DNA from: Pelomyxa schiedti
Taxonomy: Eukaryota > Protista > Evosea
Length of the DNA stretch: 64,000 bases
Assembly: GCA_020536535.1 (NCBI GenBank)
Contig: JAHLWZ010000795.1
Coordinates: forward strand, 62,001-126,000
Direction of reading: 5' to 3'
Positions 4,391-58,962 of this stretch are shown one piece after another. Every line of letters starts with the position of its first letter. Position 1 is the stretch's first letter. The position numbers and the translations under genes were made by a program. The notes under the pieces are model-generated. The model was not told where the DNA came from. It saw nothing but the letters and a program-made list of their open reading frames with translations, and searched no databases.

Positions 4391-5997
4391 CTAGGAAGAA
4401 AGCCTATCCCCACCTTGGGCTTTTAATTCTTCGTCGAGTTCATACTGCTTCAGCTCCTGCTTCTGTGACAACTCTGCTACCACACGTGAAGCTTCCTCAG
4501 CAGATTTGCGCTTTTTCTCAACAGATTTTTGCTTTGCCTCTGCAATTGCTTCGGCTGCCTCACGTAGTTTTATGAGGTTATCAAGTTCCGATTGGAGTGT
4601 TGCAATTGACTTCCGGGCTGCCGTTGCGTTTGATTGCTCAGATTTTACTGTTGGTGCAGCAGTAGTAGGGGCATTAGTAGTTCGTGGTCTCTTTGTTTGC
4701 GGTTCCGTTGCTGATTCACCCACAAATTGGTTCCCATACACCGATGTAGTGTTGGAGGTGTTGAGGAATGCTGATGCTGCTGATGACGCGATAGAAGCAG
4801 TGCTGGGAGGAGGAATGGGTGCAGGAAAAGTGGGAGTGCTAGTGAAGGTAGGGGAGGGGTCTGTGGAATTGTTAACTGGGGTGGGAATGAGGGAAGCCGG
4901 GACGTTAGTTGCAGTGGGAGGCGGAACGGGAAGAGCGGGAGAGCTCGTTTGTGGTAGTGGTTGTGACTGTGACTGTGATTGCGATGACGATTGCGATTGC
5001 GATGGCGATTGTACAGCGAACGGGCTGCCGCTCTTCTTACCCGGAACTTGATAGAGTGGTGAAATTTGGTCAGCATTTACTGAAGGAACAGACCCGGTCG
5101 TATTGGAAACGATACTGGTGAGTTGGTCTGGTATTCCTGAAGAAGCAACTGGCTGTAAGACTGGTACTGGGGTGTTTGGACTAGCAGAGATATCTGTACT
5201 AGTACTACCAACGGTATTGACTTGCGCAGTAGAATCTATTGGTGCGCCAGGAGCTGGTGCTACTGTTGGGGGACCTACATTTACTGCAGTACTTTGAATT
5301 CCCTCAGCAATTCCCCTCGTAGGATTATGCTTTAGTATGAAGTCGTACAGCTTTACAGCGAGTTCACCACCTGATGCAATTTGTGCCTTGGTGCAGGCTT
5401 CCTTCAATTGGGAATCCTTCATGGAGTGAGAGCAGATATGCTCAATATATTTCAGGGAATAATGGGTTTTGTTCTTGCAGCCTTTTGCGATTACTTTCTT
5501 ATTAAAACACATAGAGGTGAGCTCGTCCTTCGAGAGCTTCTTTTTCATCAAAGTCAGAGCTTCTGCGCCTGATGGGTCCCTAAGCAGCTGTTCGATAATC
5601 ACCTCATCACTAATTGGGTTTGGCACAGGGCGTGCTGAGTCACTCGACTCTTCAGTCTTGGTATGCTTTGAGTTTTTCCTCTTTTTTCCCGCATGTGGCT
5701 TCTCCTCAGAATCGGACCCGTGCTTCTTCTTCGGCTTCTTATCTCCCCCCTCGTCGGCGATCGACTTCTTCTTCTTCTTGCCAGACTTCTCCTTCTTGAC
5801 TTTTTCCTCCTCCTTCTCCTTTTCCTTTTCCTTCTTCTCCTTCTTCCCCTTCTTCTCTTTCTTCTCCTTTTCGGCTTTCACTCCGTCGGCGCTCTTCTTT
5901 GGCCTCCCCGCCTTGGCGCCTGGTTTCCTCCCCCTCTTGGCAGGCGTGCTCGCGGCCGCAAGCGCCGCCGCCGCCGCCGCTGCCGCATTGGTCGCGG

Positions 5998-6028
<31 letters not shown>

Positions 6029-6262
6029 GAGTTGGGGTTGCCCCGGGCTCATCTGCATCGGCTGCTGGGCGCCCATCGGCATTATTCCCATGCCCATTCC
6101 TATTCCCATTCCCATGGGCATCTGCATGCCGGATGTGGGGTACGGCATGGGCGTCTGCTGCATCGGCTGCGGCATGTGCATCGTCGGTGTCATGGGCATC
6201 GGCTGCGGCATGGTGGCGTACGCGAAGTACTGGGCGTTGGCACCGGGGGGCATGCTCTCCAT
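4391..6262 (-). CDS. Low-complexity nuclear protein with AT-hook-like motif, Lys/Glu-rich NLS region and C-terminal coiled coil
   Basis: Long ORF 4391-6475 with likely start MESMPPG at 6262. Contains M/P/Q-rich N-terminus, polyQ/polyA, KRGRKPGAKAGRPKK, a KE-rich block, a small globular middle segment, an S/P/T-rich region and a heptad-like C-terminus. Confidence 0.65.
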
Positions 6263-6546
6263 GTTGGTGCGAACACTATTTGTTTTTACTCCGAAGGAGA
6301 CTCGGCGGGATCGGGGTTGTTGGTGGGTTTTTTTTTTTTTTGTTGTAGCAAAAAAAAAACTCGTTTTTCGCACTGGAGAGGAGATCAGAGAAGAAGCACC
6401 TCGCCAACGATCAGATTCTGAAGCCTCAGGGGTGCCAGCAGCACTATGGCTAAGGAAACTTGGGTTGGGTTTCAAGAAAAGGACAGACTGTTCGACTTCA
6501 TCTTCCAGATCTCATCAAATTGTCTTGCGTTTGAACACACCACGCC

Positions 6547-18154: not shown

Positions 18155-18825
18155 ATGACGGAGTGGCAGGCGCCCTTGTTCTCGGTTTGTGGTTTTTGCC
18201 TTCTTTTGTTCGTTGCTTCTCTTCTTTAGCGTTGTAGTTATTCTCACTTTAATACACAACAGTGTAAAAAGTGCAGCTGTCGATCATGTATGAATTGCTC
18301 GTTTCAATGTGGAAATACCTAGTATTAACACTTTTATCAGTCTGCTATGCTTTTTGTTGTTCGTCCTGCGCTTCAGCAACGGCTGTCAATGTATGGCCCA
18401 TTTCTTTTTTTCCTTTCTTTTTTTTAGCTGCAGCACTGACTCTTCCCAGAACTTCGACGATACAAACTGGTGTATTGCGTGCATGTACTCCTCCGCCCCT
18501 CTTGTTCGTAACCACATCCGCATGGGCTACGGAATCGAGGTACAGTCAATGCCCATCTTTTTATTTTAGCTTTATCTTCACCCTTTCGTTTCTTATTGTC
18601 CATTCTGAATTGTGACTTTCCGTTTTGCTGTAGCGTGAACCCTAAGGGATTAATAAACTTGCCCGCATTAATCCGGAACAACTAACAACACTAACCAACC
18701 AACAGGGGACCTATCTTCAGGACGCGTTGATTGGGTGCCTCCTTCCGTGGTGCTCTACATGCCAAGTGCTTGAGGAGGTCAAGAAACGTGGTGCACCTCC
18801 AACAGCCAAACACATGAAGAGCTAA
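18155..18825 (+). CDS. PLAC8-family cysteine-rich protein
   Basis: Exons read MTEWQAPLFS, CYAFCCSSCASAT, CIACMYSSAPLVRNHIRMGYGIE and DALIGCLLPWCSTCQVLEEVKKRG, which follows the PLAC8 pattern (W..LF, CCxxC, R..IR..YGI, C..C..CQ..E). Confidence 0.8.
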
Positions 18826-18993
18826 CTCGCAAGATGTCCCCTATTTATGAGCCACCACAAAAACGTCAAGAACCACTTGTACATACACCCTCATTGAACC
18901 AATAAATCAAAAGAAAGAAAGCTCCAGCTTCCAACAAACATAGTTTAGTTTACGTAAAGCTTCTCAGAAAGGTAAAATACATCAGGCATGTCG

Positions 18994-21375
18994 TTAAGAA
19001 CAATCAATTGGCTTGTTGCGGGACTGCCAGGCGTCAGTGAAGGTGAAATGTAGAATGATACATACACCGGCCTTTAGGGACATGAGACTAGCTCCAAGAC
19101 TGGCTACTTTCTTGCTCAAGGTTGGTGTCTCTGAATCGTCGCTGGATTCCAGTTCTGTAGACGTGAGCCGCACTTTTTGCTTGTGCATATGCTGTTGGCC
19201 CTTGTGTTTGCTTTTATGAATCTTGGAAGGGCTCGGCCGAATAAGGCTTTTGTGCACGTATTCGCCCTTTTCCCAGTGGTACTTGATGTGGTGGAACATA
19301 CCAGTGACCGCATCTACTCGTCGTGAATACTCTGACCAGCCGGACTTTCCCCAGATTTTGCAATACGGGCATGTGTACCTCTCACTACCCTTGTTCGGTA
19401 CAACTTCTTTAGCTTTCTCCCACGCATCGTGGGCCGTTCGCCCTGAATGAACTGTAAAACACAGTAAGTATTACAAAATGGCCACTTCGTACTACATACC
19501 CTCCTTCTCACGGGATCCAGTATCACGCGCCGCCGAGTGATGTGATCTTTTATGCACTGGGGAGGCACGAGCACGTGCGACCGAGCGAGGTTTAGATGCC
19601 TTCTCGCGGCTCTGACGCTCCTGAACTCTTACGTATTGTCCCTCACCTTTCAGATAGTGCCCGTACAAGTGTGAATTCAAGCTGGAAATTGCACGGGCTC
19701 TGGATTCGTAGTACTTCCATCCAGGCCTTTTGTAGTTGCACAATGGACACTCGTACGGTGTGTTTTCATCAATCGGCACCCTGCGTCTCACTTGTTCCAA
19801 CGTGCTCACAGGCTCTGTAAAAGCACCACGCAATATTACTTAAAACACACTAACGATATAAGATACGAACGTAATCTCGTACCGTCGGTAGTTGGCCCTC
19901 GTCCGCCTGTCATCTGTTCTCTTTTTGATATTTCTTGTTGTCGATAAGAAAGTATCTTCCCGGAACCCTTAAATACAAAAAAAAAAAACTTGGTTATCTT
20001 CTTTTTGACATGTGTCACTCACTCAAGTCTTCGAAGTAATACAGCAACGGCGTTCCATGCTTGAGAGACCACTCACGTCTGCTCTCGTGGCTTGTGAGCA
20101 CAGCCTTGTGGTGCACGGACGTCGCCGTGGATGTTTTTGCTTTCGGTGGTGGTTGTGGTGCTGCGGGCAGTTCGCAATCAGTTGCTGGGTGTTGCTTGTG
20201 TTTCTTCGCTGCACTTCTGCCAATATGCACACGTGCGGATTTACTAATCTGCATTGGAGGAGTTAGTTTCATAGTATCCGAGAAATGCACGTTGCATCAC
20301 CTGTCTGCGCGGAATTGCACCCTCTGGCACTGATTGTGAGTAGTTGGTTGGAGAACGGTCCGGTTCAATTTGCTTTTGTGAGTTCTCGGTCTCGCTCTCA
20401 GTCTCCGTATCTGTCTCTGACTCTGACTTGGAATGTGACTCTGCCTCTAACTCTGATGACTCTGATTCCGATCCTAATGACTCTAGCTGTGGGCTGCAAC
20501 AGTCACTCTTCAAGTGCTGGTATGTCGCCTCAATGGCACGCTCCCTGTCGGAGCCGTATTGTCGCCACCCAAGCGGCCCCAAATAGGCATGGCACTGTGT
20601 GCACGTAAAGGGAGTACTCGGCATAATGGGAACTATGATTCTGGCTCTGAGCCTTGCCACTTTCCCATTCAACGTTGATTTGTTGGAGTCGGAGTCATCT
20701 GACACTGCTATTGGTATGTGTGATATTTCCCGGAGTTTCTGATGTTTACGTTTTCTAGATTTTTGCTTGTTTTGCCGCAAGGCCTTGGGTTTCTGCTGGA
20801 TTCTGCATCTGGGTATAGCCCATTTATGGTATTGGAGGTGCCTGTACAAGCTGCAAGTAGCACTCCTTCTTGATGTATACCAGCACCAACCAGGCTTCTT
20901 ATACGAACTTGTACAAACCGGGCACTCATATGGCGTATCCCGCTCAACTGGGACCACGTTGTTTGCTCTCTCATATAGTCCCTCTAAATTCCCAATCAGT
21001 TCTTTGCTGGAATAATTAGAAACTAGGTTCTGGGAGTGAATGCCCATTCGTTATTATCCAAAAGAATCACGCACCCTCTGCCTCGCAATGCAAGCGTCCG
21101 TTAGATCGCTTGTGCACCTTTTGACGCACATAACGGCTGAATCTCCTTCCCCTGTGCCTTTGCAAGTGCTTGTGTAGGCTGGACAGTGCACTGTTTCTGG
21201 AGGCATAGTGAACCCACCCAGGCCTTGTGAATTTGTTGCACTCTGGGCACTCGTATGGCGTGTCCTTGTCGAGTGGCAAGATGCTTTTGGCTCGCTGCAG
21301 TGTGCTCATTGTCGTTCCCTCCTCTTCAAGTGCATAGGATGTTGTTAGAAGATTGTTGTGGGCTACCTGACACAA
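18994..21375 (-). CDS. Protein (or tight tandem cluster) with five long-spacer C2H2-like zinc-finger repeats
   Basis: Five homologous units of the form VP-x3-5-(TP/R)Y-x-C-x2-C-x22-25-H-x3-H with an internal GW-x2-Y. The GT-AG join between the 19492-19833 ORF and the 19.0-19.45 kb exon keeps frame. Confidence 0.7.
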
Positions 21376-21535
21376 AAGCCAATCTCGTTGCCGTACCAGT
21401 ACCGTTGTATACCACGTGGTACGAGCAGGGATTTAACAAACTTTTTCCTTTCCTTTCCTTCAAATTTTGTTTATGCTCAATCTGACATTGTGAAGGGAAA
21501 ATAGTTTTTGCTAGGTGGGGTTTTAATTTTTTTTA

Positions 21536-23598
21536 ATGTTTTTATCTATCTGTTCAGTGGTGCTAGAAGAAAACGCGTATCCTTCTTCGTTTTTGTGTGG
21601 GGGCGATCGAATCACAACAAGTGCCAGGATGTCAGTACTGAGTTCGTCATCCCTTATTTCTTCGCGGGTATCAGTGTTGCCACCTGGCCATTTTGGTTTA
21701 TCTCCTTGGACCCGCAACCGATCCCTTCCTCAGAACTTGCGTGATGAGAGTCTCTAGACTGTTTTCGTTTTCGGCGCAAACAGATTTCTCGTTGTTGTTA
21801 GAGGTCGTAGCAAGTCATCCCGTAATAACGAATCCAACAGGGGGAAGTGCCAGGGGGTGGGTGAATGGCAACCAATATGGGCGACTCGGATGCAATTGAG
21901 GAAGACTTAAATTGCGGGGACAGTGGTATCCATTTTGTACTTTTCTGTTTCCCCCATTTCACCCTTTCTTCATGGCACAGACTTTGAACCAGAAATTTCT
22001 CCTGGTTCCAGTCCAAATCTGTACGCGGCTCCACAGAGTAACTCTCATATTCCTATCTCTTTTGAGATAAATGACTCGTTGAACAGAGTTTTCCTTGTCA
22101 AATATGCCACCAATCAACAGCAAAGCAAATGTCACTGCAGGTATTGCTACCCAGCGCTAAGTTATCCATAATCCTATTTCATGAAATAGATTCTAAAGAA
22201 GAATCAAGCCAAAATTACCTAAACCAAGAAGGCATGCACCCACTCCTCTCTTTTCTGTTAACCCTTTTTGTAGTGAATGCACAGAGTTCAGGTATCTGGT
22301 AAATTTCCCATGTCCTGTCAACCCAAATTAAATAAATTTATTGATCAGGTTCCTCTACAGCAAATCTCCTCAATGGTATGGTGATTAACAATGTAACTAC
22401 ATTCACATATGTCTTAGACGATTCTTCTCCAAGTCCAGAGAGAGAGGTTCAGGCACAACCATCGAAGGTGACTCCTAAAACTTTGATGCAAGGCATGGAG
22501 GTGATTTTTTCTTTGTTGGGTACATTCTTATTTTATCAGCACGTTTCTATTGAAGATAACGGCTTATTACCTCCGAAGTCAAACTCTGGAATCGGTGTTC
22601 CCCCTGAACGAGGAGACCACTCAACAAATTCGAATTCCAAGGTATCTTCTCGCACAGCAAATCTGGTTAAAATATGATACGAGATTGGAAGCAATAGTGG
22701 TAGATCGTCCGCAAGCCAGTTCCCCAAAAAGGCCACTCCTCAAGCCGCGCCACGGGCTCAGCCAACCATCACTCCACCTACAAGGAGCCCTGTGACTCCT
22801 TTAAAGGGCAAAACTCCAATGCTGGTTCCCAATAAAACTTCAGTCACCCTAAAATCGCGAACGCCAAATAAACCAAGTGTCCTGTCTCAACCCCCTCAAC
22901 TGCCAGCTGTCAAGTTCAACTTTACGCCTCCCAATGGGAAAACCTTTGGCCAGCCAAGAATTGTCACTGCTGGAACTCCCTCTTCACGATTCAGTTCGAA
23001 CTCTCCTCGACCTGAAGCACATAATATTACAGATAATCAGCCGACTCAAAACACTCGCACCCCCCAAGTTAAACAATACTATTCATCATCGTCAGTATCC
23101 TCCTCTTATTCCTCAGACTCATCCTCAACTGGGGGCTCAGGGTCTCCGGTCATGGACCCCGATATCATTGTAATGCAATCACCCTCTAGGCGACCAGGCC
23201 ACCCAGTAGCAGAATCACATCACCATCATAGACGTGGCAGCCACGCCCATGACAAGCACAAGCACAAGCACAAGCACAAGCACTCTCACCATAGGCACCA
23301 TGCAGAGCATTCCTGCCACTGCCGCACCATAGTGATGAAAGATGCACAAACCCAAACACCACCTTTAGCCTTTTTACCAGTCTGGGTTGGCCCAGATAAC
23401 TCTGTGGAAGTCCCAGGATTGCACACACACCAACAAGGATACCCAATGACCCTCCCGACTGGTGGTATACCTCCCGCAGCCTGGACTCTACCAATTGAAT
23501 GCCGTACCTCTCAGTACAGCGAATTTCCAACGCCGGGTCTCCCGCCCTCTAGTCTTCCCTCCTATGTGCGTTCCTTCCTCAAGACAGCAATTAGCTAA
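21536..23598 (+). CDS. Hypothetical multi-exon S/P/T-rich protein with His-rich tract
   Basis: Plus-strand exons bounded by GT-AG from about 21.5 kb. The last ORF 22792-23598 includes HHHHRRGSHAHDKHKHKHKHKHSHHRHH. The start is uncertain. Confidence 0.5.
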
Positions 23599-40232: not shown

Positions 40233-41504
40233 TCACCAGATGCGAGAGGAATAACCAGGTTCAAATGCACTGAAGGAGCAACCAGGGAGGAGGAACTCGA
40301 CGGTGGCAACGGTCTTCATGTCCAACGACGCCGATGCCTCAATCACGTGTATTTTCTTCCTGTCATCACTCACTTTCAGGAAGAAGCCAAGGCCAATCAT
40401 GAAGTGCTGCATCTTGGGCACTTGGATGCTCGAAATTGCGTTGTGGAGGTTGTTACAATCCCAGATGAGAACTTTGGTCGTGTGCAAAACACAGAACAGA
40501 GACTCACTCAGTTGAGACACTCCTCTTGCTCTTCTGTCAAGAACTGAGGTCACAGTTTCTTCTTGGGAATCATTCGTATCTAATGCCAATGCGCGGAGGG
40601 GCATGCCTAAATGAGCAGATGAAGCAATGAAAATGGCTTGGCCGTTGCTTTTTCTCATTGGCAGAAGATCCCTGATCTTTGAACCTTTGCAACTTCTACA
40701 CATCAACTTGATTGAGCTCATTGAGAGGATTTTTGTGGAGCAGGATGCATCGGCGTCAATGATCCAAAGTGTCAGGTCGTACTTATGTGATTTTTTGCTG
40801 CTGGTATCGCGGAGAACAATAAAAGCTTCGTTCTCAACAAACTTATTGAAGCAGACAAAGCAAGAAGCCATGCCAGGAGGAAATGGGAAAACATGGTCAG
40901 CAACAGCATCATCTCGTTGTGTCGGCAGACTCCCCAAAACGATTCTGCTTTCCTTGGCGTGTTTCCCACCGCAGCAAGCCATGAACCACTTGCTGTTGGC
41001 ACAAAACCACTTGTCTCGATCAGAGAGATACATCAAGTCGTCAGCCTTCTCGGTAAACACCAGGGTATCCACTCCCATAAGTTCGTCCCTCAAGAAAAGC
41101 TCGTGGTAATTCCACCCCAATCCACGCCCACCACCCAGCCTCCATTCATAGTTCAACGACTCCCTCACAGTCAACTCGTGCGTGATTCCCAGAAGTAACA
41201 TCGAGATGCCGATCTCAAACACACACGATCTCTTGAGCGGGTGCCCTGGTGGGCTCCTCGACACCCTGACGTCGACGGCGAGCCACCTCACGCACCCCAT
41301 CACCCACTCGTCCCATAACAGCCTCACAACTGGCGCAGCGAGCGCAACCCCGGCCTTCCGCCCACGAGGGCGCGTCGCCAGCAGCAGCGCGGCAACTTGG
41401 TCGCGCGCGCGTATACCGGCCAAGTTGGGTGCGCCCTGCCACGGCATCGCCTCTTTTGAGTTCCTTGATCTCTTTGGTGGTGGTCCACACACGACGTCGC
41501 TCAT
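40233..41504 (-). CDS. Single-exon hypothetical protein (423 aa) with helical N-terminal motif and beta-rich C-terminal region
   Basis: Uninterrupted ORF with a GC-rich 5' end. N-terminal motif IRARDQVAALLLA..VVRLLWDEWV, then beta-strand-like repeats (LTLWIID, VLIWDCNN). Confidence 0.75.
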   Translation of the reverse strand: MSDVVCGPPPKRSRNSKEAMPWQGAPNLAGIRARDQVAALLLATRPRGRKAGVALAAPVVRLLWDEWVMGCVRWLAVDVRVSRSPPGHPLKRSCVFEIGISMLLLGITHELTVRESLNYEWRLGGGRGLGWNYHELFLRDELMGVDTLVFTEKADDLMYLSDRDKWFCANSKWFMACCGGKHAKESRIVLGSLPTQRDDAVADHVFPFPPGMASCFVCFNKFVENEAFIVLRDTSSKKSHKYDLTLWIIDADASCSTKILSMSSIKLMCRSCKGSKIRDLLPMRKSNGQAIFIASSAHLGMPLRALALDTNDSQEETVTSVLDRRARGVSQLSESLFCVLHTTKVLIWDCNNLHNAISSIQVPKMQHFMIGLGFFLKVSDDRKKIHVIEASASLDMKTVATVEFLLPGCSFSAFEPGYSSRIW

Positions 41505-52976: not shown

Positions 52977-55521
52977 TTAGCTTACAGAGTGTTCTGGGGA
53001 TGTGGTTGCCTCTGTGGCTGGAGGAGAGGGTGAATTGGTGCCAATTTCCGGACTTGTGGTGTTGGTTGGTTCTGTGTGTTGGATAATGAGGTCTGTTGCT
53101 GCTTCCGCCATGAGCCTCAGGGCTCGTGAAGGGTCGGTGGGTTTTGTGGTTGTTGGTGGGAGGGTTGATGGTGGTGGGGGTGGTGTTGGTGTTTGTTGGT
53201 CCACTACTACATAGGTGGTGTCTGTTATTTGAGGTGAGGGTGTTTGGGTAGGGCTCGTCATGTATGTTTGTGGGGAGGTTGTGTAAGGTTGGATTACTGC
53301 GTTGCGGGAGTTGGACGATTTGCCCGTCCTGCGGCGCTTCGACTTCGGTGATATGGTGTCCCCGGAGGATTTCTTCCCAGGTGTATACAAAGAACCTTCT
53401 GTGTGAGAGCTTCTGTACTTTTTGGCCCACTGAAGACCACAGGCATTGCACAATCTGTCAATCTCAATAAGGTAGGAAGTATTTCGATAATAGGACACAC
53501 GTTGCCGGTCCTTCAGGACCTTTCCGCCACTCGGGTGTGTTCTTTCTCCCACAGAAATGGCAATACAACTGGGATTTATCCACTCCAGATAACCTGCGTC
53601 TCGTGCTTGACTACTTGTGGTTAGAAGTAAGAACTTTACTGTGCGGATGAGGCACCTTAGTAGGTTGAACAGGTTCTTGCACTGGTTCCTCTTGTGGCGT
53701 TATAAGGGGTGACGATATGGGATTAAAAGATGGGATTGGAGGAGGTGGTGGAGGAGTTTGTTGGAGTTGAAGGAGCAACTTTCTGCAAATTTGGTTGTCT
53801 CCAACAGATTCCCCTTTTGCCTTCCCCCCTTTGCGTGTTGACTTCTTTGTAACCTCTTTTGGAGGCTCTTCTGAAACTTGAGGTTCTGTTTGGCATGGAT
53901 TGTACATATTCGGGTCTTGCTTGGTGGGGTTGGCTTGGCGTTCATCTCTAACTGGCTCGAGAGTTTGAGCTTGTTGTTCAGTTCCGTAGTCATTTTGAAC
54001 CTGAGTGGCTTCGGGCTGTTTCTGAAGCAGAGGAATCGTAAAAGTATCTTGTGGGTCTGGTCTTTCTGGTTGCTGTTGTTGCTGTTGCTGTTGTAGGAGA
54101 AGTTGCTCTAGAAGTTGCAGTTGCTGGGTTGCAATAAGCTGTCGTAGTTGGTTCTCAACAAAGATTTTTTGTTGTTGTTGCTCTCTTTGTTCTACCTCTA
54201 GCATTTCCATCATTTTCTGTGGGTCCTGCGGGTACTGAAGGGGTTGCTGTTCTGGAGTGGGTTGCCATTGAATAAGTGCCTGTAGGAAGGTGGTGTCCAG
54301 TGATTTTTGCGCCTGGTCAGTAGAATCGTGAACAGACGAGGGAATTGGGGTAGGGAGTGGAGGAGGACAATCCAGTGTTGATGTGTTGGGTGAAATAACT
54401 AGATTTGCGGAAGGTGGTAAACAAGGTGAAAGTGAAGGGTTAGGAATGGGTGGTGGGTGTTCAAGTGGGATCAGTTGTTGTGGCAGCGACGGCGGGCACA
54501 AGACCCTACCAGCGCTACCTGCACTAGATAACGCGTCCTGCCCAAAAGCCGCAGAGGACAGGTACATCTCCTCGCGCTTTTGGGGGAGAACACCGGAGCC
54601 GCTGATGCAATCCGTTGTCGCGTCGGTCGCCACGAGTGCTGTCGGTTCGCTTTCGGTGGTCGGTTGCCCACTCGGTTCTTCCTCAGCACACTCGATCGAG
54701 TCTGGTGCCCCGGCCGACGTCGGTTCCTGTCCGACTTTTTTTCCTTGCGTCGGGTTCGGGTCGTTGCTTGTTGGGGTTGTGATGTCGCTGTTGTCGCCTT
54801 TTGTCGCAGTTCCGGCACGGCAGAGTGTCGCCTCACGTGTCGCTGACCGCACCACGTCCCCCTCTAATTTGGCTTTTTTTGGATCCTCCGGCAGAAACTG
54901 TAGATCAGAAGGTGGCCTTTCCGAATTCGGCTGATTCGAAATCGGGCTGGCAGCAGTTGCCGGGCAATGTGTGTCGGGAAACCCCAAAAAGCAACCGAAA
55001 TTTGCCGAAGCGGCGTTGTCGTCGGCTTCGCGGCCGACTTCGTCGGTTGCCATGAGCTCCTCTGGGATTTGTGCCTCCTCGCGTTGTCGTCGGCTTCGCG
55101 CGCCGCGCGTCGTCGCTGTCTTGGTGGGGGATGACCGCGGCGTTATGGGCGACCGAGAGCGAGGCGTGTGCAGCGGCGACGTGTTGCACGAATGGCCGTT
55201 AGTGCTCGTGATCGCGATGCAATCTCGCGGCTGGGAGTGGGCGGGAGCAGCTTTCTTGGGCGCTGCTACGGCGGCAGTGTGTTGTTGTTGTTGGCCGTGG
55301 TAGTGCCGGCTGCTGGATTTGCTGTCCTGGTGTCCTTGGTGTTGCTGCTGGGATTTACAGTTATGGCAAAGTCGCTGGGCGGCGTCGCGGCGCTCGCGGG
55401 CGCGGCGTGACACGAGGGTAAGTGCAGCGGCTTTGACAACCCACTCGGCGACGTAGGCTCGCCGTTGTCGTTTGACGGCAGGGTCTCTGCCGCGAGGCTG
55501 GAGTGAATTATGGGACTCCAT
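52977..55521 (-). CDS. GATA-type zinc-finger transcription factor
   Basis: Long Q/P/S-rich first exon. The joined exons give [32 protein letters not shown] (C-x2-C-x18-C-x2-C). Confidence 0.9.
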
Positions 55522-55853: not shown

Positions 55854-58800
55854 ATGGTTTCGGTTTCGAATGCGCACACAGCCGTAATCGTCGTCGCCGC
55901 CGCCGCCGTCGTCTCGCTGCTCGCCCCCGCCTGCCTCTGCCAGTCTCCCCCTGCGGCGTCGTACGCGCGCGTCTACTACGTCCCGGGGGCGTCGCCTCCG
56001 TGGGACCCCTCGTGGGCCCCGGCCGTGGCCAGCGTCGACGTCGCCGCGGCGGGCTCGCCGTCGTCGCCGCCGTCGGTGTCGCCCCCCGAGGCCCGCTGCC
56101 TCCTCGGCCCCGGCGGCGACGGCGAGGACGTCGCGGCCTACATCTCGCAGGGCGCGTTCGCGGCCGACCTGGTCGAGGACCTCGAGGAGGACGGGGGCAG
56201 CACCCTGTGGTACTACTTCGTCGCCGGGAAGACCCTGTACGCCGTGAATCTGACGTCGTGCGACGTGGAGGTCGTCTCGGCGCTAGCCACCCCCATCGAC
56301 ATTGTGGGACTCACGTGGTCGGAATCCGACGGCGTCTTCTTCGCCATCGGGCACACCTTCGAGTGCGGAGAAGAACGAACAGTTCTGCACAGAATGACCA
56401 GAGATGGATTTCTGGAGCAAGTAGGAATGTTGCACTCTCCGGGATGGGAACGTGTGCAGTACTCGGTGGACAGTTTGGCGTTCTCTGACATGACTGGAGA
56501 ATTGTATGCCTACTCTGGAAGCCCTTGTGCCATGCATTCCATTGACCCGTGTGATGCAACTGTTGTGGCGTCTGCTGTGTGCCCGGGATCCGGTTATATT
56601 ACCTCCAGGTATCCTCCTAAATTTGGGTTTTGCTTTTCTGTCGTTTTTTTTTTTTTTCTTTGTTTTTTTTTGTTTTATTATCATTACTTGCTTAGTGATT
56701 TATTTCTTTTTTGGCCCGCTGTCATTGTGTGTATTAATATTGGTTGGGTACTACCAATGGAGTGATGTTTCCCTTGACTTCGACGATGAGACTGGGGAGC
56801 TCTATATGGCACCAGCCAGTATTGTTGGCATTTGGATTATGAATCACACTGCATGCATCCCGATTTCTGAAATTACACCACCAGATGTCAGTGTATATGG
56901 AATTGGTGTGCTGCATATGTACGCCCATTTGCAGAGTCCCAGTAGCAGTGAGAGTTCTTCATATTTCACTGAGCTTGACGATTTCTCTGATGAGATAGGT
57001 GCTAATTTCGCAATTTTCACTTGTGCTTCTTATGCAGGATTTACCTACCCAATTGAAAATTGGTTGTGTTCAGTCTGCCCTCCTGAGTGGGAGTCTCAGA
57101 TTGATCTCATAGGAACGTTTAGAGATCCATGGCACTACTCTTTTGGGTATGTGATGCATGTGAATGGCATGGGCCTTCTAGTAGTAATAAGGGGGATTGC
57201 AGGGTCCACCCTGCAGTGGATGCTGGATGGTGACTTGAGACAAGACCTGTATCCACTACAACCAACAAGTGGGAAGCTTGCTCTAGTACACTCCGGATTT
57301 CTACAAATTACTGAAGCTGTTAAGTTGGCTGTAGAAAAACTTATCCGCGAGGGCTTGAGCATGTTCGAGTATTCCGACGTTGTATTTGCTGGTCACAGTA
57401 TGGGAGGGTCTGTGGCGGCATTGTTAGCACCAATAGTTTGGGCTGACCTTTCATATGACTATGACTTGCCTCGTGGGTTTCTCAAGGTGATCACTCTGGG
57501 ACAACCGCGTGTTGGGAATGCAGGGTTTAATGACGTCCTTTTATCTGCCACTGACTTTCACCATCGAGTTATTCACCATTGCGATCCTGTTCCACAAGTT
57601 CCGAGTGACGGCTACACACACTTTGCCACTGAACACTGGATTTCCGTTTGTGGAGGCAATACTTCCATTTCATGTGACAGTTCTGGTGAAGATCCTTCTT
57701 GCAGTAGGAGCTGTAGTACTGAGGAGTACACCAGTCACGCTTTGGACCACAACTTGTATTACAATGTTGCGTACCTCTCGACTACATGGTCATATGACAC
57801 GGTCGATCCTTGTGAAGGAGAATGTTGGTCAAGTTCTGAAAGTTGCCAGTTTGATGCGAACAACGTACCAAAATGCATGTGTACGATCCCTGGACTCGTC
57901 ACTGCAGAAGTTGGGGGGTGCCAGTTGCCGGATCCAATCAGTGTGGTACCCACACTCAATTCCGTTGTTTTGGAGATTAGAAAAACTGACACTGTTTCTG
58001 ACTTGCTTGCTTTGTTCAAATTTGAACTTTCTGGAAAGTTCAATGTGGCCATAGAGACCATCATCAACTGGCACACTTCATCACCAAATACTAAAAGAGA
58101 GGACTGTACTACAGTGAGCACGAACGACACAGCAGCGGAGAGTTGTCTGCTCTCTGTACAATTCGCATACTCTAATACTAGCAACAGCTCGTTTGCCTGG
58201 TTTTTCACAGATATACTTCATAATCACGCCACTCTTGAAACCTTTTCTATTATGCGTGCTTCAATTGCTGTAGTTGATGACAATGACACGCTCACATCCG
58301 TGTCAGTTGAGCAAACTGATGTAGTGACAGGTAACTCCGAGCTACTCCCTTCCCACTATTTATTCCTTACGATGAAAAAAGATCCCAGCTGTTCTGAGAG
58401 CTGTCTTCAGTCCTGGATAGGCGATGGGATGTGTGATATTGGTTGTCTTGTAGCAAGCTGTCAATATGACCAAGGGGACTGTCCTGATGTTCCCAGCAGC
58501 TCCGCAAGTGAATCCAGGTCAGTCTCTAAATCAAGCTCTGCAAGTTCCAGTCAACAACAAAGTGTAGCATCAACGGCAAGTACAGAGTTGGACTCTGAAG
58601 GCAGCAGTTCCCATTCCAGTTCAAGTACAAGACATTCTATCCCCCATTCAGATGAACAATCATCGCTTGTGAGTAATCCTCTGGAATCCTATCCACTTGG
58701 GCAGTCATCTCAATACCTTGAGACCCCTTCCAGTGAGGACGTTATAACTGTCTCCCTCTGGATACTAGTTGCCGTTGCCGGAGGTGCAGGTGTTCTATGT

Positions 58801-58962
58801 ATTCTGGCTTTTCTGGCAGGCCTCAGTGTGGCTTGTTGTGCCGTGAAGAAGAAGAATGAGCCTACTATTGAGGAGAGCTTTTCCTCTGCTTTCTCTGATG
58901 ACGGCTCACGCAGAAGAGCAGGATTGGGACCAAGAGACATTCCTCTTGATAATTTGAACTGA
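55854..58962 (+). CDS. Type I membrane class-3 lipase with EGF-like and LNR modules
   Basis: Signal peptide, then lipase motifs VHSGF, FAGHSMGGSVA, ITLGQPRVGN, RVIHHCDPVPQVP and DHNLYY. Then a Cys-rich module, LNR CSESCLQSWIGDGMCDIGCLVASCQYDQGDC, a Ser-rich stalk and TM LWILVAVAGGAGVLCILAFLAGL. Confidence 0.88.

Follow-up and report, generated by a model that had tools for sequence, protein, structure and literature searches.

The minus strand of the window analysed here, a stretch of 64,000 nucleotides from the Pelomyxa schiedti assembly (contig C795:62001-126000), raises the question of what a series of repeated Cys/His units encodes: how many genes carry them, whether they belong to any named zinc finger family, and what they might bind. 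The initial annotation had described a five-unit array of a C2H2-like finger with an unusually long spacer, and had regarded it as a candidate nucleic-acid or chromatin-binding module.

Five modules in two tandem genes

Three-frame translation of positions 18700-21700 places five diverged copies of a module of about 55 residues on the minus strand between 19261 and 21309, with the pattern A..(I/V)VP, PY.CP.C, GW, SR..A, L..HL..H. All five occur at exactly the Cys/His spacings that had been annotated (Table 1), and the distance from the second Cys to the first ligand His, which is 23, 24, 25, 22 and 23 residues in units 1 to 5, is indeed about double the classical 12. In each unit, an N-terminal helix closing in (I/V/L)(V/L)P is followed by (P)Y/F-x-C, the GW pair and a helix of the form A...L..H, so that the preceding helix with (V/L)P, the GW and the Ala-bearing helix described initially can all be seen in the minus-strand translation. 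Unit 3 is a variant module ending in H-x4-CC instead of H-x3-H, with the helix KVARLRARIIVP before it and an acidic Ser/Glu/Thr tail after it, and unit 5 represents a 'KSGW...FHH' subtype. The likeness among the five units is far beyond chance, and a six-frame genome search with unit 1 as the query recovers units 2, 4, 5 and 3 at E = 7e-15, 3e-14, 4.5e-5 and 2e-3, respectively. The family profile used for scoring is an alignment of 50 full-length units collected in the window and at ten other loci; unit 1, which is itself part of this profile, matches it at E=8e-22.

Table 1. Modules, gene models and antisense RNA at the locus, in window coordinates.
Feature	Positions	Strand	Details
Unit 1, CPEC-x23-HLQRH	21145..21309	-	First Cys codon 21249; opens at the ATG of ORF 21309-21067
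Unit 2, CPVC-x24-HLQYH	20820..20978	-	First Cys codon 20924; within ORF 21047-20244; profile E=2.4e-20
Unit 3, CTQC-x25-H-x4-CC, C2HC-type end	20490..20657	-	First Cys codon 20603; profile E=6.5e-15
Unit 4, CPLC-x22-HLYGH	19642..19803	-	First Cys codon 19749; exon 2 of Pelo_10377; profile E=4.4e-19
Unit 5, CPYC-x23-HIKYH	19261..19428	-	First Cys codon 19371; exon 3 of Pelo_10377; profile E=1.7e-19
Gene A (units 1-3)	20244..21309	-	Two ORFs, 21309-21067 (with ATG) and 21047-20244
Gene B (Pelo_10377, KAH3757825.1)	18994..19913	-	Annotated, 258 aa; carries units 4-5
Gene B exons	19913-19883, 19838-19500, 19442-19066, 19023-18994	-	Each translated separately and matched to KAH3757825.1
Spliced RNA antisense to units 2-3	20477..20924	+	45-nt intron 20714-20758 and a template-switch-oligo-like tag

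The five units are present as annotated; however, they do not form one array. Units 4 and 5 belong to a single annotated gene, gene B, whose ATG (19913) comes some 330 nt after the gene A stop (20244), with a T-run in the interval; the supposed five-unit array is therefore a pair of tandem paralogous genes, one with units 1-3 and the other with units 4-5. Gene B has three GT-AG introns of 44, 57 and 42 nt. The initial annotation had correctly placed some units on separate exons, and it had remarked that the ORF track shows the frame of unit 5 only in part, which is because unit 5 sits in exon 3 of a spliced gene and no ATG precedes it in frame.

For gene A, no annotated protein was present among the database matches of a profile search of 1.84 billion representative proteins. 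When the GT-AG introns that leave the reading frame open were enumerated, a candidate 52-nt intron (21074-21023, donor AGG|GTGCGT) was obtained that may join the two ORFs. A 45-nt candidate between units 1 and 2 (21074-21030) was dropped, as it runs into a stop. In the published P. schiedti annotation, 98.4% of the introns are GT-AG (PMC8887013). Its gene models come from Augustus, with refinement by PASA and EVM using transcriptome data (PMC8887013), and the annotated family models used here are consequently predictions.

RNA over the locus comes from one run of single-cell RNA-seq in the study that produced the genome, in the form of assembled contigs without depth or strand, which lie at 20477-20924, 21050-21402 and 18704-18884. 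The RNA contigs contain a 45-nt skip that the DNA runs lack. It can be cut equally well at two places one base apart; with the right-hand cut (20714-20758), the skipped sequence is GTATGT...CTAG on the plus strand and CT..AC on the finger strand. In plus orientation, position 20477 is preceded by the non-genomic GTACATGGG, which we take to be the 3' end of the SMART template-switch oligo, a marker of an RNA 5' end. Because the 45-nt intron is GT..AG on the plus strand and the oligo tag precedes 20477, these features point to a spliced plus-strand transcript that runs antisense to units 2-3. The strand-informative RNA features over gene A in this run are antisense only, and the RNA contig at 21050-21260 crosses the candidate donor site of gene A unspliced. 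No convincing plus-strand ORF was seen in the 20477-20924 transcript. The RNA contig at 18704-18884 has a loose end of 164 letters whose match begins at 18508, suggestive of a spliced transcript immediately downstream of gene B.

Elsewhere in the window, an 818-aa ORF at 56506-58962 (plus strand) combines a class-3 lipase domain with a Notch LNR domain (Pfam E = 6.5e-22 and 3e-5), which is an unusual pairing. Three long minus-strand ORFs, at 4391-6475 (694 aa), 53611-55521 (636 aa) and 40233-41504 (423 aa), are without any Pfam match.

A multigene family in Pelomyxa

In the organism's own 52-Mb assembly, a six-frame search with unit 1 alone gave 57 matches, which comprise the other four window units and about 50 copies on other contigs, with E values down to 4e-17. 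The 50-unit profile finds 58 modules on 11 contigs, four of them truncated and none interrupted by an internal stop. When the same profile was run with hmmsearch against the 1.84 billion representative proteins, 16 matches were obtained at E <= 0.001, of which 11 span the whole module. Ten of these were looked up in NCBI, where all are listed as 'hypothetical protein Pelo_... [Pelomyxa schiedti]', and the eleventh is residue-for-residue equal to a module on contig C1117; the alignments of the remaining five, all classical multi-C2H2 proteins, are confined to the Cys knuckle (profile positions 12-31). With about 58 modules in P. schiedti and no full-module match elsewhere in these searches, the family is, as judged by sequence similarity at HMMER sensitivity among these representatives, which should take in the public proteomes of other Archamoebae, known so far from the anaerobic amoeba P. 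schiedti alone.

Annotated members of the family are between 148 and 830 aa long and carry one to four modules, and no other Pfam domains were found in them. Between the modules lie basic (Lys/Arg-rich) stretches and acidic runs of Ser/Asp/Glu or Thr/Glu, in line with the basic or acidic disordered linkers described in the initial annotation. Taken together, the family proteins consist of two to four modules of about 55 residues with disordered basic and acidic linkers, and they form a multigene family restricted, so far, to Pelomyxa. A finger designated type B often precedes 'LSDKVAMLRAVL' and a degenerate third module, and in some paralogues the Cys ligands of such third modules are respaced or lost, which suggests that not every module needs to bind metal.

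Contig C1117 (1-18469, 18.5 kb) is wholly a head-to-tail array of the family, with 31 co-oriented modules in at least three or four genes, and contig C1432 (6.3 kb, 10 modules) looks like a segment paralogous to it. At least seven family genes on other contigs end in the tail '...LNSELPRP(P/Q)H.RQ(V/D)-stop' or a close variant (minus strand; L031:4596, L042:4288 and 2698, L032:3398 and 315, L036:3635, L033:901), which could serve as a short linear motif in localisation or docking; both window genes are without a tail of this type.

Across the 50-unit alignment, P12, C21, C24, G31, W32, A41 and H48 are invariant, and conservation is 90% or higher at A7, P22 and R38. Position 52/53 (spacing 3 or 4) supplies the fourth ligand, which 43 units have as His and the remaining seven as Cys. 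Among the alignment columns, those of the ligands and the core have the lowest entropy and those at positions 39, 40, 43, 46, 47, 50 and 51 of the long helix the highest, and the modules carry a mean net charge of +3.4. A Nei-Gojobori comparison of 58 paralogue pairs with at least 50% identity gave a pooled pN of 0.30, a pS of 0.58 and a dN/dS of 0.34, which is a rough value, as the pairs are non-independent and dS is close to saturation; for unit 3 and its counterpart on contig C2123, the dN/dS is 0.30. A maximum-likelihood tree built from the units has poor resolution overall, but recovers subtypes common to several arrays: unit 3 groups with C2123:176-355 (support 100/99), unit 5 falls within a 'KSGW...FHHLQ' clade and unit 4 lies near an 'SGW.YY.SRDRAV' clade. 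Since such subtype clades are common to the window and to other arrays, the tree fits a duplication of whole multi-unit genes.

Predicted fold and comparison with named finger families

Units 1 and 3 were modelled with AlphaFold2 on the 50-unit alignment. The unit 1 model (mean pLDDT 86.7) has a helix at residues 3-10, a hairpin (19-20/28-29) round the CPEC knuckle, a GW loop at 30-37 and a helix at 38-55 that bears H48 and H52; the C2HC variant, unit 3, is modelled with the same layout at a pLDDT of 85.9. A fold of helix, Cys-knuckle hairpin, GW loop and long His-bearing helix is thus predicted, and our confidence in the family and in this modelled fold is high. No neighbour of this fold emerged from the structure libraries. 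Foldseek against the PDB gave nothing above noise for either model (E >= 2.7), the top, non-significant row for unit 3 being JAZ ZF3 (E=2.7, TM 0.22). A BFVD search gave no viral match (E >= 2.3), the ESM-Atlas shape search returned unrelated larger proteins only and its feature search only unnamed bacterial clusters, and in an exhaustive VIA-align scan of 48,161 chains the highest Z, 4.4, belonged to membrane proteins that are unrelated. For a domain of 60 residues, this shows only that no known finger stands out among the predicted-fold comparisons, and it is no proof of a new fold.

The initial annotation had assigned the units to no named finger family, and the comparisons with Pfam, PDB sequences, BED fingers and four fold libraries likewise gave no membership. 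A strong match to an existing Pfam family, which would have removed the novelty, was found neither in the four window ORFs nor in the 50 units. For the four ORFs, the matches were marginal and lay at the Cys knuckle, with listed scores of 7-10 bits against a cut-off of 40. Among the 50 units, zf-H2C2_2 (PF13465) matched marginally in 21 (best E 0.0019, knuckle only), zf-C2H2 (PF00096) in two (best E=0.0074, below the Pfam cut-off), and Di19 (PF05605) and FBX41 (PF23165) in eight each with non-significant best E values of 0.096 and 0.086. A profile search of PDB sequences gave nothing below E=0.025, with top rows that align the knuckle only, and Rfam gave no match over the whole window. The classical spacing C-x2-4-C-x12-H-x3-5-H is ruled out by the aligned ligand columns C24 and H48, which have 22-25 residues between them in the five window units. 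Of the beta-beta-alpha arrangement, the AlphaFold2 models have the hairpin and the His-bearing helix, plus an extra helix and loop, and no C2H2 structure was found among the fold-search matches.

The BED finger (PF02892) was tested as the most plausible named relative because of the long spacer, the upstream Trp and the 'S..L..HL' helix. The zf-BED model takes five other loci in the same genome and none of the 58 modules, and zf-BED does not appear in the list of the 25 Pfam families most often matched by the 50 units. A profile-profile comparison with hhalign against the five BED fingers of the same genome gave a probability of 1.9% over 13 columns, a weak test given the small BED set. These five genuine BED fingers lie on contigs C1971, C1437, C1254, C482 and C909; the C1971/C1437 pair is 69% identical and may belong to a repeated element. 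Fingers of the U1, matrin or JAZ type were likewise rejected, with none of them among the 25 most-matched Pfam families listed, and no significant match to the zf-BED, JAZ or U1 types was obtained. On present sequence evidence, the module would be filed under no named family and may be described as resembling a C2H2/C2HC finger with an insertion of about 10 residues and an added N-terminal helix.

Possible roles and relation to known systems

We consider it probable that these are lineage-restricted, tandemly expanding C2H2/C2HC-like zinc modules in charged disordered proteins, which would probably be nuclear and nucleic-acid-binding. Based on the alignment and the models, we propose the following scenario, in which (i) Cys21, Cys24, His48 and His/Cys52-53 would hold one zinc ion per module, as the conservation of the ligands suggests; (ii) the invariant Trp32 and the aliphatic positions would pack a small core against the N-terminal helix; (iii) the variable, solvent-facing helix positions 39, 40, 43, 46 and 47 before His48, on a net basic module, would form a recognition surface, with DNA or RNA as its most probable target; and (iv) the proteins would work in the nucleus as regulators or chromatin proteins and would diversify through tandem duplication. 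We hold with moderate confidence that the module may bind nucleic acid, a view for which the ligand pattern speaks together with the architecture and the basic charge; however, the basic charge and the disordered linkers would also fit fingers that bind RNA or protein.

It is possible, if unlikely, that the modules are zinc fingers for protein, ubiquitin or RNA and not for DNA, and that the proteins are scaffolds or RNA-processing factors. The fold and ligand evidence is the same for this reading as for the one we favour, and the long spacer and extended helix recall C2H2 relatives that do not bind DNA, with JAZ ZF3 at the head of the non-significant Foldseek rows for unit 3. The fingers also stand far apart on long disordered linkers, unlike the tight TGEKP-linked arrays that read DNA. 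However, JAZ, U1, matrin and UBZ fingers are without significant similarity to the module, and the basic linkers and modules suit nucleic acid generally and do not separate DNA from RNA. We regard as improbable a reading in which the module is a zinc-binding domain of new structure that recognises DNA and that arose, or diverged past recognition, in Pelomyxidae, and in which its arrays are a fast-evolving recognition system, directed for example against mobile elements or endosymbiont-derived DNA, as an amoebozoan counterpart of KRAB-ZNF clusters.

We likewise think it improbable that a mobile element or virus has spread through the genome with the family as its cargo or remnant, in which case the genes would not be a set of host regulators. 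The high copy number, the restriction to one species and the small contigs C1117, C1432 and C2123, which are made only of family genes, are in keeping with this view, and zinc-chelating DNA-binding domains are often common to transposases and lineage-specific transcription factors (PMC1702500). Yet neither the family proteins nor the long ORFs of the array contigs showed a transposase, integrase or reverse-transcriptase domain, the fold search gave no viral match, the copies are 35-60% identical and not near-identical, and the head-to-tail arrays lie inside ordinary chromosomal contigs and have spliceosomal introns. Very improbable, finally, is that the window copies, gene A above all, are decaying pseudogenes or unexpressed duplicates: gene A lacks an annotated protein among the database matches, is divided over two ORFs and is overlain by RNA that looks antisense, and both window genes are without the C-terminal tail, but all five modules keep every invariant residue with no internal stop, a plausible 52-nt GT-AG intron could connect the gene A ORFs, and the dN/dS is below 1, including that of the unit 3/C2123 pair.

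The module is of interest as a domain: it is conserved, repeated, cleanly delimited and missing from the family libraries, and is hence a candidate for a new domain-family entry. A familiar ligand set (Cys2-His-His/Cys) is placed in an unfamiliar architecture, and with about 60 residues the module is a small and tractable target. To our knowledge, no lineage-specific transcription-factor family is known in Archamoebae. If the module reads DNA, such a family would be added to this group; if it does not, the arrays would be an ordinary orphan expansion. Orphan expansions of zinc modules in protists are unsurprising in themselves, and what is gained here is a cleanly defined new domain from an amoeba that has been little studied.

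Like the classical C2H2 finger, the module has Cys-x2-Cys ... His-x3/4-His(Cys) as its ligands, an aromatic residue placed two positions ahead of the first Cys and a predicted hairpin followed by a His-bearing helix, and its 'TPY.CP.C' knuckle resembles the TGEKPY.CP.C linker-knuckle. It differs in its spacer (22-25 residues as opposed to 12) and length (about 55 residues as opposed to about 28), in its invariant Gly-Trp loop, longer helix and obligatory N-terminal helix with A..(I/V)VP, and in the long disordered linkers that stand between units in place of TGEKP. With the BED finger it shares Cys-x2-Cys, the long spacer and a helix ending in H-x3-5-H/C, as well as a conserved upstream aromatic residue (often Trp) and the 'S..L..HL' helix motif, whereas BED is without the invariant GW loop and the IVP motif. 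At the level of gene families, the KRAB-ZNF genes of vertebrates and the ZAD-ZNF genes of insects are tandemly clustered, lineage-specific zinc-finger families. The Pelomyxa proteins differ from these in finger type, in having few and widely spaced fingers, and in that no KRAB or ZAD-like effector domain was found in them, but resemble them in their head-to-tail gene arrays, in a conserved metal scaffold with a variable helix face, and in their confinement to one lineage.
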